From: Dimorphilus gyrociliatus
Lineage: Eukaryota; Animalia; Annelida
Length of the DNA: 64,000 nt
Reading direction: 5' to 3'
Assembly (NCBI GenBank): GCA_904063045.1
Contig: CAJFCJ010000020.1
Span: 1,170,916-1,234,915 of the forward strand
Both the position numbers and the translations under genes were made by a program. The notes beneath the pieces are model-generated. The model had not been told where the DNA came from, did not search any database, and worked only from the letters and a program-made list of their open reading frames with translations. Shown piece by piece: positions 2,437 to 7,862 of the stretch; the first letter of the stretch is position 1; each line of letters begins with the position of its first letter.

Positions 2437-3085
2437 GATAAGCCGATAGTCTCTCACAAAAAAAGTCAGTTTTTTATTTGTATCTTATGAAAGTGCGCAA
2501 TTTAAATAAAAGCCTAGTTAACGGTGTCCCTTTTTTTACACATCAACAATCTTGCATTTTTTCTCTTTGGCAACAAACAGCACTTTCGATTTCTAATTTT
2601 CTATTTAGTTAAGGAACCCCATCTAGCAGCAGTTAAAAAGAAAGCGTTTCCACCTAGTGGTCTGTTATTACCTCTTGCTTTAATTAGTTTTCTATTAGTT
2701 AACCTAATCGAAAAAAAATCTGTATTTACTTTTACCAAATACATAAGCATTTTACAAGATCCATCGAGTGTTTTGTATACTCTGCCTATAAATATATAGA
2801 CTTTATTTATTTATATAATCTTCACTGTGAAAGAAATAGAAATTACTCATACTGTAGTGTGATGCCAAGTTTATGGCTATTTAATGATAATATAAAAATA
2901 AACTATTAAAGAAAAGAAGAGGGTTTTTGAGAACTAAAATATTGCAAATATTCACTCTTCTCCTAATTGTTTAGCTGAAAAGAAAAGGCAAAATATGAGT
3001 TAAAATTTGGTTCAAATGATGTCAGCCTAAAAATATATCGCTTTCTAACTTATAATACTTTTTTTCAAGTGTCTAGAAGTATAGA

Positions 3086-5048
3086 CTAAACCCATTCTGG
3101 TTGCCATCCCATTCTCTCTCTAACCGACACTCGTAATCTTTCGAAACTTGTCTGAAATCTTTTCTTGACTACAGTAATCCAGTCCGATACTCTTTTTAGA
3201 GCATTCCCAAACCTTGAACGAATTTCATCGTCGGAAGAATCGTGAAAATTTACGGCTATTTGAAAGAGATTATTTAAAGCTGTAGATATAGATTCGTAAT
3301 CGTGAGCTGAACATTCAACGTAGCTAATAACACCATCTTTTCCAACTAATTTTCCTATAATATGCCTTTGATGAGTTTCAAATTCCTCCGTGTCTAAGCC
3401 ATAATACTGACAGTAACGCTCAACAGCAGATTCGTCCTTTCTTAAATCAGTTTTTAATCCTAGGATCATACATGCAGCTCGAGAATTGTAACAACGCAAA
3501 TCTGGCAACCATTTTTGGACAATTTGAGTAATAGAAGTTGGATTTGTTAAGTCGATACACAAAGCTACAGCAATAGCTTTTTCGTAAATAAATGGCCTTA
3601 ACGCAGAATAACGATCGCCTCCACCCTTTTTTTTAAAATAGAATAAAGAAACTTCAATTAACAGATGAAATCCCTTAAAACTACTAGAAATTAAAGTACT
3701 CTACCATGTCAATAATACGTAGTCGTCTTTCAATATCGTAAATCGTTGTCTCAACAGTCATTTCGTCGTAGACGGTTGGAATGTAGATTTGGTCAAAAGT
3801 ATCGTAGAAGAACCTTTGTAACAGACTAGACTTCCCAGTCTGGCAATCACCCAATAACAAGCAAGTTGGTATCTTGTCTATTTTCTCTTTCGACATGCTT
3901 AGTTGGTGAACTAAATTCTCTATTTTCGTGTTCTGCCTTTGCTTCATTTCACTTAATTCTATTTGAGCTTGTTCATACATCTGCCATAAGGGAAAAGATA
4001 AGTGATGACCTAAAGCTTGATTAAATCAATTCTACTACTGTAAATTAATCAAAAGATACTATGATATTCAAGCTTAAAGGTCAGAGAGAAAAACATCATA
4101 ACATGGATAGAACATCAATTGAAATAAAATACCTGAGAATACTTGCATGTTGTTTGGTAGATTGTAAATAATTTTTAATTTGATAAACGTTAATTAATCA
4201 AACTAACCCTCAATTCATCATGTTCTTCATATAGAGTACGAACTTTTTCCCTTAATTCGCGCAATTCCTGCTGCATATCATTTTCGATCTGTGAAACAAT
4301 ATTAAGAAACAAGGCAAACTTTCAATACTTAGTTTTATTACAATTTTCTCAAATGAATACGCCAAGACAAACATGCGTAAAAGCTTTGTAAAAGTTTATC
4401 AAAATCTTATGCTATCACCCCCGTGTAGTTATAATTTACAAACTAAACATTCTTTCTTTTCATACTATTCTTCATTATTGTTAGTGATGGGTTTCGAAGA
4501 GTGAGAAATGGGGGAGGGGTTAACAAAAAGGGTGGAATAAATGAGAATGTTTAAGGCTAACACTTTTAATGTGCTTCATCTAACGAAAACAGACATTTCC
4601 CACTCTAAGGCATCAAACGATAAACAAAAGGAGATAAGGAGGGAATGCTCTTTCATATCATTACCTGGCAGAACTTTCTTAATTCGCTGGAAACTTCTTT
4701 AATTGATCTTTTCTTCTCCTCATCTTTAATCATGTCCATAAACGACTTTTCATCCATACTTTCGACTGAATTCCAATCTCTTTCAATTAGGGCAGCCAGG
4801 TCAGGATGATTCCTATCTAAAATATCGCTTAAAACAGAGGGTGGGAAGCCTTTCTGTCTTACGGCCAATATTAAGGATCGACATCTCTCGGCTCTTGTAG
4901 TATTCTTCTTAATAATCATGTCAAATTCATAAGCAGTTAATATGTCATCTTTAAAGAGAGCTTGTTTTAATTCAACAATATCAACGAATTGTAATAATTC
5001 TGAAGTAAACTTTTGATATATATAAGCCGATTTAGGGCTGAATTCCAT
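3086..5048 (-). CDS. CARD/death-fold + coiled-coil + atypical Rho-family GTPase fusion (~426 aa); exons 5048-4665, 4288-4208, 3980-3705, 3625-3086
   Basis: All junctions GT-AG, phase 0. N-terminal helical segment with CARD-like pattern (L..L....ILT..EFD.I....TR.ER.R.LI..V..KG); G1 GDCQTGKS, effector YIPTVYD, G3 DMGGGDRY, G4 LKTDLR, G5 ECSA. Confidence 0.75.
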
Positions 5049-5459
5049 TTTTCTTATTGTTAGGACTGTATATGTAGTAGGCGGATGGTGCAGTTATTTT
5101 GTTTTGTATACCACGCACTGGATCTTTGTATATGCAAACTCGTTTAGATTTTAACGATCAGTCAGTAACGCCATCTTCTGCTTTCTCAACCCGGAAGAAG
5201 TTAGCAGGTTTTTTCGTTTATTTTACTTGGAAATTCTAGCTGTAAAACAGCTACTCTGCCACCTATTTTCTATATATTCGTATGTATACAGAAGGTATTC
5301 TAATATACCCATCTGTCTATTCACAACTGCGGTAAACAGAACTTCTATACATTAAAGTATTAAATTTCAGCGTTTAATTGAAAAACATCATTACTAAATC
5401 TTTATTCAATGTAATTTGTAATTAGAAATATTAATTGCTTTACAAAATTCTGTTAAATA

Positions 5460-7862
5460 TCAGTTTGTTGTAACTCGGTCCATCACGTGACCTTTAATAG
5501 CTTCCTTAGCCGATAAGCCTATACCATAAACTTGAATAAGATTACCATGAATTCTTAAAAAGAAAGAAGAAAAAAATTACTACTTCCTCTCAGAGATTAT
5601 TTATGTAACTCTTTCTACATACTTTACATCAACTATTGGATGAGTGATACGAAAGGCGTCACCATCAACATTTATATAATCTAAAAATTCAGTGAGACCA
5701 TCCTCTTCTGGTGTTAAATGCATTCTAAATGCTTCAATATCGTGACTTTCAATGAAAGGAAAATCGTACTGGAAAGAAAGAATTGAAAGGTAAAGATTAA
5801 ACGACATAATAAATAGTATAGGTAAACTAACGGTAGTCGATTTAAAGCCGGACATTCTGTATATGTGCTTTAGTTGTTGAATTCTACTGCACTTTCTCGT
5901 CAGGTGGAGAAAGGCTATTGGCTCTCCATGCGCCGTCTCCAATTCCTTATGACCAAATATATCTCTAGCTGCCATCTCTATATTAATAAATTCTCCAGAA
6001 ACTTTCAACCAGTCTACGTTCAAAGTAAAAGTGAAATAGTTTGTTGAATATCTTCAATAAAGCAATTAGCATATTTACCTTTACTGTTAACCGGTAAAAC
6101 TTCAAGAGCAGCGGGAAAAATACGATGATTCATTATGGTCTTGAAAACTTTTGAAAATGTAAAATTAAACAATTTTTGTTTTTTTAAAAAAAAAAAAACT
6201 GCCAAGTAATAATTAATTACGAGAAAACGGATATCTTGCCTCGCCCATCCACAAGTTGTTTTCACATTCCAAAACTGAGTCGGAATAAAAGCCATGACCG
6301 CATATTAAATTACCGCAAGTTATTAACTTTCCATCATTATGAACTGTATACGATTTCATTGAAAATGAATGTCCTGTTAAAGAAAATAAAACAATTAAAA
6401 GATTAAAACAATATTTTATATTTATAAAATTATTTTTAACCTTTAATTATATGAAGTGCAGCTGTAACGGGGTCATCTGTACCAATAGCCATTCTGACAG
6501 AGCCTTGTTTAGTTCCTATAGAATAGAAAGAAAATAAGGTTAAGTACACTTTTAAACAACTTATCGCTTTGTTTTTACTTATTATTTCGTCTTACTAAAG
6601 ATAAACTTGAATTATTTAGGGCAGTTTGAAAGGAGATAAAAAAAGATATAGCACGTGTTTTAAAGGTTCTATCATTAATGATATAATGAAAGAATGTAAG
6701 GAAAAATATTTTGTGCATTATTTATATTACTAAAGATTCCTACAAGAGAAAAATTCACCCCGTATTAGTTTATACAGTAAACATTTCACACCTGTTGGAA
6801 TTATTCCAACTTTAACCTTTGATTGGACGAATTCAACGTCGGAATGGTGCTCATTCCTGTTCGAAAGAATCATGGCTTTGCTGATTAAACCATTACAGCA
6901 TTCTGTAAAAGAACCGTCACCTCCAGCAGATACAACTCTGTGAATAAAATACAGTAAAATAGGTGTTGATCTGGCTTATCCTTTTATTAGAGTAAAAGTC
7001 AATTACCCGTCTACTGCATCCAGATTGTAAACTTGTAGCATCTTTCTAGCATGACCTCGATATCTTGTAACTATTAATTTACATATACATTTTAAACATA
7101 TTGAACCAAAAAGTTATTATTTTTAGTATGTATAACATACTGTTAGCGGTTGTAAAGGAAATTTTTATCGTTCTATGATGAATAGAATGTAAAGGTAAGC
7201 TTTTTTCGGCCAGTTCCCTAATCCAAACCTCTCCCCCCTGCCCTTTACTTCCACCTTTTAGCAAAACTTACCGATTACATCTGCATTAATGGATGCCAAG
7301 CGGAAGAGTGGTGCGACAAGTTTCTCATAAACCCTTATACCTGCTCCTTTACCACCTAAAGGGTTTATAAAAACTAACAGATTCTTAGGTCTTATACCAG
7401 AATTTTTTTTCTTTACAATGTTATGTAAAGAATCAACCCAAAGTTTACAAACATCTGAGGAATGACAGGAAAATTGCACATGAGCTACATCCCATTTATG
7501 TATTTTTTCATCCAAATGAACGATATAGTGTAATATGAATTTGGTTACATCAATTCTGTCAGCTGATAAAATATTTTCAATAATAACTTTCCTAAAATGA
7601 ATACAAAGTGAATAAATAAAAGACATTTTGAAAAAAGTAACAAAAACAAAGGTTGTAAAGAGAATAAATCTTTTTTTCTTTGTTATAATAATTAAAAAAT
7701 ATATATGATTGTTTTATGCATTTACTTATATACTCTAATTAATACTCACTCGCCAATCTCTTCTCCTTCGTGATCCGATCTCCAAAAGATTCTACTCTCG
7801 TTTAGATCAACGTCAAAAGATTTTCCATGAATGTCAAAGTTATTTGATAAGATGCTCTCCAT
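5460..7862 (-). CDS. CERK: Ceramide kinase-like protein (PH-like N-terminus + DAGK catalytic domain), divergent, multi-exon
   Basis: RPKNLLVFINPLGGKGAGIRVYEKLVAPLF, GGDG, GIIPTG, GFYSD...WMGEARY, RKCSR, NVDGD; ATG 7862, TGA 5460-5462. Confidence 0.82.

Follow-up and report, generated by a model that had tools for sequence, protein, structure and literature searches.

The annelid Dimorphilus gyrociliatus carries, on the minus strand of a 64,000-nucleotide (nt) stretch of its genome (NCBI GenBank assembly GCA_904063045.1, contig CAJFCJ010000020.1, positions 1,170,916 to 1,234,915 of the forward strand; hereafter the window), a four-exon gene whose 426 codons are predicted to encode an N-terminal CARD, a putative coiled coil, a divergent G domain of Rho type and a tail that lacks a CAAX box. 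The gene is genuine, expressed, single-copy and under strong purifying selection, and no description of its combination of domains appeared in the literature and databases consulted. An earlier reading of the window, made from its letters only (the sequence-only reading), had proposed this architecture, suggested that the G domain is locked in its GTP-bound state and not prenylated, and interpreted the protein as a scaffold that links death-fold signalling to cytoskeletal or immune effectors. The architecture is well supported by what follows, while the state of the G domain can be read in more than one way.

Transcript and conservation of the gene

The exons were read from the window sequence and their joints from an RNA-derived contig. 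Translation is taken to begin at the ATG at 5048–5046, the earliest start following an in-frame stop; every exon is in phase 0 and all three introns have GT..AG ends. The sole public run that contains the stretch (run X1, kept as contigs) holds a single contig of 1363 nt covering 3068–3624, 3704–3980, 4208–4288 and 4665–5112, with joints that correspond exactly to the three predicted introns. Since the X1 contigs skip introns that have CT..AC ends on the plus strand, the run is evidently RNA-derived. Given that this spliced contig spans all exons, and that the upstream neighbour gene (5378 onward) lies on separate X1 contigs, the exons from 5048 to 3086 belong to one transcript and not to two separate genes, and the clean four-exon model of the sequence-only reading stands as drawn. 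A further RNA contig of low depth (5.2), 260 nt long, lies wholly within intron 1 (window 4360–4619), and is probably unspliced precursor RNA, an independent small transcript being the alternative.

The gene is present once in the 77.9-Mb genome, and searching the window by tblastn with each exon revealed no paralogue. An exhaustive HMMER search with exon 4 over 1.84 billion representative proteins returned one match below 1e-30, a fragment of 127 residues (P0001) from an open reading frame (ORF) that is 83% identical to exon 4, the next best match reaching 81 bits at 26% identity. A Pfam scan of 20 matches, comprising 18 longer proteins, P0001 and the exon-1 match P0151, detected no CARD in any of the 18, which are tandem-Rho proteins (artefacts), kinase-Rho, RhoU-like or low-complexity fusions. 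With exon 1, a word-based search found only P0151, the exon-1 ORF of the same relative, in a search limited to 70–224 amino acids, to which full-length kin are invisible, and which was not exhaustive for this exon; a scan of JGI metagenomes with exon 4 gave no match.

P0001 resides on two identical Logan contigs (L009, L010) of a relative, which share ~75% nucleotide identity with the window over ~8 kb and keep its gene order, with an ion-channel gene downstream, thus representing a syntenic orthologue. All four exons, their lengths and their GT..AG sites are conserved in it, at an amino-acid identity of 81–88%. The comparison yields a nonsynonymous divergence (dN) of 0.074 and a synonymous divergence (dS) of ~1.35, a dN/dS of 0.055; exon 1 by itself is 87.5% identical with a dN/dS of 0.047. 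The segments GDCQTGKS, DMGGG, LKTD and MGWQPEWV are unchanged, and SAH in the window is SAK in the orthologue. Judged by these comparisons the protein appears strongly constrained yet restricted to one lineage.

Domains and motifs of the predicted protein

Homology searches and structure models were run exon by exon, and residue numbers in the spliced protein follow by arithmetic. Four kinds of evidence, from Pfam, profile–profile comparison, language-model features and structure models, agree in the firm prediction that exon 1 encodes a CARD, which gives a family to the N-terminus that had been called death-fold-like. The Pfam CARD profile is matched over positions 18–82/83 of its 85, at E 7.8e-4 (19.9 bits) in the window and at E 2.8e-4 (21.3 bits) in the orthologous exon-1 ORF, both under the 23.9-bit gathering cut-off. 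When the two orthologous exon-1 sequences were compared by hhalign with a profile of 10 CARDs, all from the same genome and all passing the Pfam cut-off, the match had a probability of 89.5% and an E-value of 2e-6 over 70 columns. By features of the protein language model ESM, the ten best family-carrying matches are all CARD clusters (top score 0.93, 204 of 256 features shared). Direct phmmer comparison of exon 1 with the PDB gave no match at E <= 10, and a profile of all the genome's CARDs recovers only CARDs from the PDB, so that this last search is not independent evidence on exon 1.

Structure models point the same way. A single-sequence AlphaFold model of exon 1, built with no alignment, reached a predicted local distance difference test score (pLDDT) of 64 and consists of six helices and a long helix at 100–127. 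Its top Foldseek matches are almost all CARDs, and in VIA-align solved CARDs occupy 18 of the 19 top rows, the remaining one being a de novo designed protein; these rows have Z 6.3–7.8 over 81–91 aligned residues, where a Z under 8 can come from common helical arrangements and is not decisive for helical bundles. A second model, based on an alignment of the orthologue with the genome's CARDs, has a pLDDT of 83.5 and superposes on the caspase-9 and Apaf-1 CARDs with template-modelling (TM) scores of 0.77–0.85 and a root-mean-square deviation of 1.8–2.0 Å. The distinction from a death domain or a death effector domain, which had been singled out for checking by profile and AlphaFold comparison, falls on the CARD side: death domains rank just below CARDs in the structure lists, and the six-helix models superpose on solved CARDs. 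The CARDs of CARMA1 and CARD9 are among the structural matches of the exon-1 models, and by Foldseek and VIA they match no better than those of Apaf-1, caspase-9 or CARD8.

The CARD is followed by a linker of ~95 residues, which begins in the exon-1 tail (residues 96–128), takes in exon 2 and extends over the initial 36 residues of exon 3. It contains neither Pro nor Gly, 33–52% of its residues are charged, and hydrophobic residues fill 17 of 27 a/d heptad positions as against 12 of 69 other positions (in exon 2, also free of Pro and Gly, 6 of 8 a/d positions). These features are consistent with a coiled coil along the linker, and agree with the coiled coil previously placed between CARD and G domain.

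The Pfam Ras profile is matched over its cut-off by exon 3 (profile 2–54, E 2.5e-8) and by exon 4 (profile 57–158, E 2.4e-10), and because these halves abut across intron 3 they constitute one G domain, split inside its DxxG motif. By its sequence this is a divergent Rho-type domain, as had been proposed from YIPTVYD. Among PDB entries exon 4 matches RhoD best (E 2.5e-16), followed by Rac1, RhoU, TC10 and Cdc42, with the Rho family in all 60 matches listed. A stretch of 121 residues spans 102 Ras-profile positions, and the Rho insert (between β5 and α4) is present: the alignment with RhoD passes through the insert region (KTDLRKDESAVERYCQYYGL vs KTDLRKDKSLVNKL-RRNGL; KTDLRKD...GL) with one 1-residue gap, and past the insert shows two small gaps with 5 extra residues in total. 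Exon 3 alone is ambiguous, with TC10 as its best PDB match, because YIPTVYD aligns with YVPTVFD, and then Rab6, RhoE and Rho6. Thus the G domain appears mosaic in its N-terminal half, a Rab6-like stretch preceding the Rho-like YIPTVYD and the C-terminal half. The stretch in question is GKSSLLQRFFYDTFDQIY (exon 3, window 3786–3839), which resembles Rab6 (GKTSLITRFMYDSFDNTY) at least about as well as Rho. Language-model features place the domain with Ras-family clusters, a RhoE cluster among them, and its identity to the genome's ordinary Rho paralogues is 23–30%.

Three hallmarks of a G domain are present, namely the GxxxxGK[ST] P-loop, the switch-I Thr and DxxG (as DMGG), while the guanine-recognition motifs G4 [NT]KxD and G5 SAK are not matched, LKTD and SAH standing in their place; these two deviations go beyond those named in the sequence-only reading, and that in G4 bears on the interpretation. 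The P-loop is unusual in carrying Cys, Gln and Thr at the positions of Rho's Gly, Ala and Cys/Val. Both substitutions singled out in the sequence-only reading recur in the orthologue, and both are of the kind that marks atypical Rho proteins: a residue other than Gly at the G12 equivalent (Cys, in GDCQTGKS) and one other than Gln at the Q61 equivalent (Gly, in DMGGGDRY).

A degenerate Roc domain derived from the genome's Roc-COR-CARD paralogue was considered as an origin of this G domain and rejected, BLASTP against that Roc domain giving E 0.95 and 0.66. As for membership of the ROCO proteins, Pfam found no COR match, and Ras outscores Roc in both halves. An intron position common with the genome's RhoA-like paralogues was likewise discarded, since theirs lies ~9 codons upstream of that in the CARD-Rho gene and is not shared. 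The same genome contains another divergent Rho-like open frame (L008, G000:C7:416681-416872, plus strand), with HETAGEDKY for WDTAGQEDY, a poly-Lys tail and no obvious CAAX.

The last 55 residues, ending in QPEWV, are free of Cys, and the protein therefore has no CAAX box; with the basic, potentially amphipathic helix that precedes the EWV end, the tail is as previously described. Within it, VKKRFQTSFER is invariant in the orthologue. The E-x-V form of the end might fit the class III PDZ-ligand pattern.

Table 1. Features of the CARD-Rho gene, in window coordinates (UTR, untranslated region)
Feature	Position	Strand	Basis or remark
5' UTR (64 nt)	5049..5112	-	as far as the run X1 contig reaches
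Exon 1, 128 codons, ATG: predicted CARD and beginning of helical/coiled-coil linker	4665..5048	-	sequence and contig
Predicted CARD, death-fold six-helix bundle, residues ~5-96	4761..5036	-	Pfam, hhalign, ESM features, models
Intron 1, 376 nt, GT..AG	4289..4664	-	contig joint 4288/4665
Exon 2, 27 codons: putative coiled-coil segment	4208..4288	-	sequence and contig
Intron 2, 227 nt, GT..AG	3981..4207	-	contig joint 3980/4208
Exon 3, 92 codons: putative coiled-coil end (3980-3873) and N-terminal third of G domain (β1 to β3)	3705..3980	-	Pfam Ras
P-loop G1 GDCQTGKS; Cys (3845-3843) at Ras G12 / RhoA G14	3828..3851	-	identical in orthologue
Switch I YIPTVYD, Rho-type, Thr retained	3765..3785	-	aligned to TC10 YVPTVFD
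Intron 3, 79 nt, GT..AG, interrupting DxxG as DM/GG	3626..3704	-	contig joint 3624/3704, 'cut +1'
Exon 4, 179 codons and TAG: remaining G domain with Rho insert, C-terminal tail	3086..3625	-	Pfam Ras, PDB matches
Gly codon at catalytic Gln (Ras Q61 / RhoA Q63), DM/GGGDRY across exon 3/4 junction	3617..3619	-	conserved in orthologue
G4 LKTD: Leu replaces NKxD asparagine, Asp kept	3446..3457	-	conserved in orthologue
Basic amphipathic helix candidate, exon-4 residues ~133-158	3152..3229	-	+4-charged stretch (hydrophobic moment 0.5-0.56); over 18-residue windows 0.45-0.56, with net charges from +3 to +5
C-terminal E-W-V	3089..3097	-	MGWQPEWV invariant in orthologue
3' UTR (18 nt)	3068..3085	-	as far as the run X1 contig reaches

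The upstream neighbour (window 5378–7301+, minus strand) has introns of 63–73 nt. In the RNA contigs alternative joints lead from 7070 to 7141 and to 7272 (window 7070–7301), suggesting a skipped cassette exon, and the product of this neighbour shows no more than a faint match to CERK_C (E 0.0035). Introns of 63–79 nt, together with the size of the genome, are in keeping with the compact genome published for Dimorphilus gyrociliatus (PMC7854359).

Possible modes of action

The mechanism favoured here, to which we give roughly an even chance of being right, is that of a non-cycling, effector-binding Rho module that is oligomerised, docked through its CARD and targeted by its tail in place of prenylation. 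Because two residues required for hydrolysis, the Gly and the catalytic Gln, are missing, the G domain would lack a normal cycle of guanine nucleotide exchange factors (GEFs) and GTPase-activating proteins (GAPs), and would serve as a constitutive effector-binding module, probably GTP-loaded, with its activity set by the place and partners of assembly. The coiled coil would oligomerise the protein; the CARD would dock by CARD–CARD contact onto the worm's other CARD proteins (CARD-caspase, Roc-COR-CARD and others), or would nucleate CARD assemblies; and the basic amphipathic tail, or the EWV end, would stand in for prenylation in targeting to membranes or partners. Candidate CARD partners are present in the same genome, a point in favour of this mechanism. 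Atypical Rho proteins with hydrolysis-blocking substitutions, such as Rnd, RhoH and RhoBTB, are constitutively GTP-bound (PMC4974793), and it is by analogy with these, and from two residues, that a GTP-locked state may be proposed. A scaffold linking death-fold signalling to cytoskeletal or immune effectors is a plausible role; of the interpretation put forward in the sequence-only reading, the parts that find support are the CARD/coiled-coil/Rho architecture with no CAAX, the single transcript and the lack of a known counterpart, and only these.

Several observations weigh against such a mechanism or the protein on which it is built. In Ras and Rab proteins, affinity for nucleotide falls when the NKxD asparagine is substituted. 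Leu takes the place of this asparagine in both species, and its conserved loss may speak for weak or absent nucleotide binding as much as the two other substitutions speak for a GTP-locked state. The CARD scores of both species fall short of the Pfam cut-off; Foldseek E-values for the exon-1 models are 0.03–0.3, with death domains scoring slightly lower than CARDs; and the better of the two models was built with true CARDs in its alignment, and therefore does not test the CARD assumption independently. The N-terminal G-domain half scores against Rab6 about as well as against Rho. Finally, expression evidence comes from one run, and folds and searches cover the exons one at a time.

The LKTD motif, conserved in the orthologue, is also an argument for the main rival, a serious one even if on balance rather doubtful: a pseudoGTPase scaffold in which stable nucleotide binding and hydrolysis have both been lost, leaving a fixed interaction surface on a CARD and a coiled coil. 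SAH in place of SAK, the unusual P-loop and the low identity to ordinary Rho proteins would all suit such a nucleotide-free protein, although SAK is found in the orthologue. Moreover, the Lys and Ser of GxxxxGKS, the switch-I Thr, the Asp and Gly of DxxG and the guanine-specifying Asp of G4 have been kept, and their conservation under a dN/dS of ~0.05–0.07 is what continued binding of nucleotide and Mg2+ would lead one to expect.

Unlikely, in our estimate, is a working switch, in which hydrolysis would occur in trans, by coiled-coil dimerisation that brings two G domains together (as in GTPases that dimerisation activates) or with the help of an unusual GAP, and nucleotide would gate CARD assembly in the manner of NTPase-driven signalosomes. 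The coiled coil directly upstream of the G domain would suit this arrangement, and the pairing of a CARD or another death fold with a switch NTPase is a recurrent design, seen in the Roc-COR-CARD protein of this genome and in AP-GTPase, AIG and GBP fusions (PMC8195603). No NB-ARC (Apaf-1-type) domain was detected in the genome, which also favours a switch, although the NTPase role could be filled by proteins behind its NACHT matches (at least 100). Further, the sequence offers no candidate catalytic residue, and dimer-dependent hydrolysis is not known for Rho-family proteins.

More speculative still, and in our view very unlikely, is a small-GTPase-based CARD nucleator: a coiled-coil oligomer of Rho-like domains whose nucleotide or partner state would gate both the assembly, driven by CARDs, and the activation of the CARD-caspase, standing in for an Apaf-1-type apoptosome in this genome with no NB-ARC domain detected, or which would couple cytoskeletal Rho effectors directly to a death-fold signalosome. 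An artefact (two neighbouring genes, a chimeric assembly, or a generic helical bundle in exon 1), for which the sub-threshold CARD score and the VIA Z under 8, attainable by common helical arrangements, could be cited, is largely refuted and highly improbable, as all exons are united in one spliced contig, the relative has kept these four exons with their splice sites, and four independent kinds of evidence are specific to CARD.

Known systems and the CARD proteins of the worm

The atypical Rho proteins (Rnd1–3, RhoH, RhoBTB1/2) share with the CARD-Rho protein a Rho-type G domain substituted at the G12 and Q61 equivalents, and are expected to be regulated through expression, localisation and partners rather than GEF/GAP cycling (PMC4974793). 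RhoBTB is similar also in having extra domains and no CAAX, but these are C-terminal BTB domains, in contrast with the N-terminal CARD and coiled coil predicted here, whereas Rnd and RhoH are prenylated, as the CARD-Rho protein cannot be. The latter is not orthologous to any of the three, its best solved matches being RhoD, Rac and RhoU, and unlike them it has lost the NKxD asparagine as well.

A CARD at the N-terminus with a coiled coil directly behind it is the arrangement of the CARD-CC family (CARD9, CARD10/11/14, of the CARD-CC/Bcl10/paracaspase complex), which has been reported in annelids and molluscs (PMC5978004). However, the coiled coil is ~95 residues here as against ~300 in that family, no specific kinship to CARD9/CARMA is demonstrable, and a Rho G domain at the C-terminus is absent from described CARD-CC proteins. 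G-protein and death-fold adaptor domains do occur in one chain in DAPK1 (Roc-COR and a death domain), and Roc-COR, AIG and GBP death-fold fusions are known from marine invertebrates (PMC8195603, PMC9334734). The zebrafish GBP-NLRP1-like CARD (PDB 4irl) represents a similar combination of GTPase and death fold, with a different class of GTPase. In the invertebrate Roc-COR-CARD proteins, one of which is encoded in the same genome, GTPase and CARD again share a chain; there the CARD is C-terminal, while in the present protein it is N-terminal and the G domain is of Rho type, with insert and with no COR. The literature and databases that were searched describe fusions of CARDs or other death folds to Roc, AIG and GBP GTPases and none to Rho, in keeping with the earlier statement that no characterised CARD-Rho protein was known.

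CARD loci that pass the Pfam cut-off number at least 13 in the genome, among them a CARD-caspase, a CARD-TPR protein, an open frame with CARD and Bcl-2-family matches, and the Roc-COR-CARD protein. In just one CARD of the genome, that of the Roc-COR-CARD protein, does phmmer detect similarity to exon 1 (E 1.7e-4 among 194 ORFs; 29% identity over 98 residues), and BLASTP of exon 1 against it is not significant, so that its designation as nearest paralogue is a weak one. The Roc-COR-CARD protein is encoded in one ORF of 849 residues (L023:123-2669, plus strand; G000:C19:2213122-2215668), with Roc at 116–228, COR-A at 335–454, COR-B at 492–595 and the C-terminal CARD at 650–721. The CARD/Bcl-2 frame (L014:946-1779, minus strand; G000:C1 around 2,785,000) comprises 278 residues, with CARD/CARD_2 at 10–93 and a Bcl-2-family match at 208–276 that reaches 28.4 bits, under its 31.4 cut-off, and may be a CARD-Bcl-2 fusion. 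A six-frame genome search for NB-ARC (Apaf-1-type) domains at E <= 0.01 found none; the NACHT matches, at least 100 over cut-off and many on small contigs, make up an NLR-type expansion that is large for a genome of 78 Mb. Taken as a pattern, CARD-TPR, CARD-Bcl-2 and Roc-COR-CARD proteins, no detectable NB-ARC and many NACHT matches suggest a rewired network of cell-death and immune adaptors in this worm.

Since the CARD-Rho gene appears restricted to one lineage, its general significance is limited. Few signalling modules of animals have been studied as thoroughly as Rho GTPases and death-fold adaptors, which are normally linked only through intermediates. A conserved and expressed natural fusion of the two would make it possible to study directly how death-fold assemblies may be connected to Rho-type effector surfaces, all the more so as the Rho part looks non-cycling and non-prenylated.

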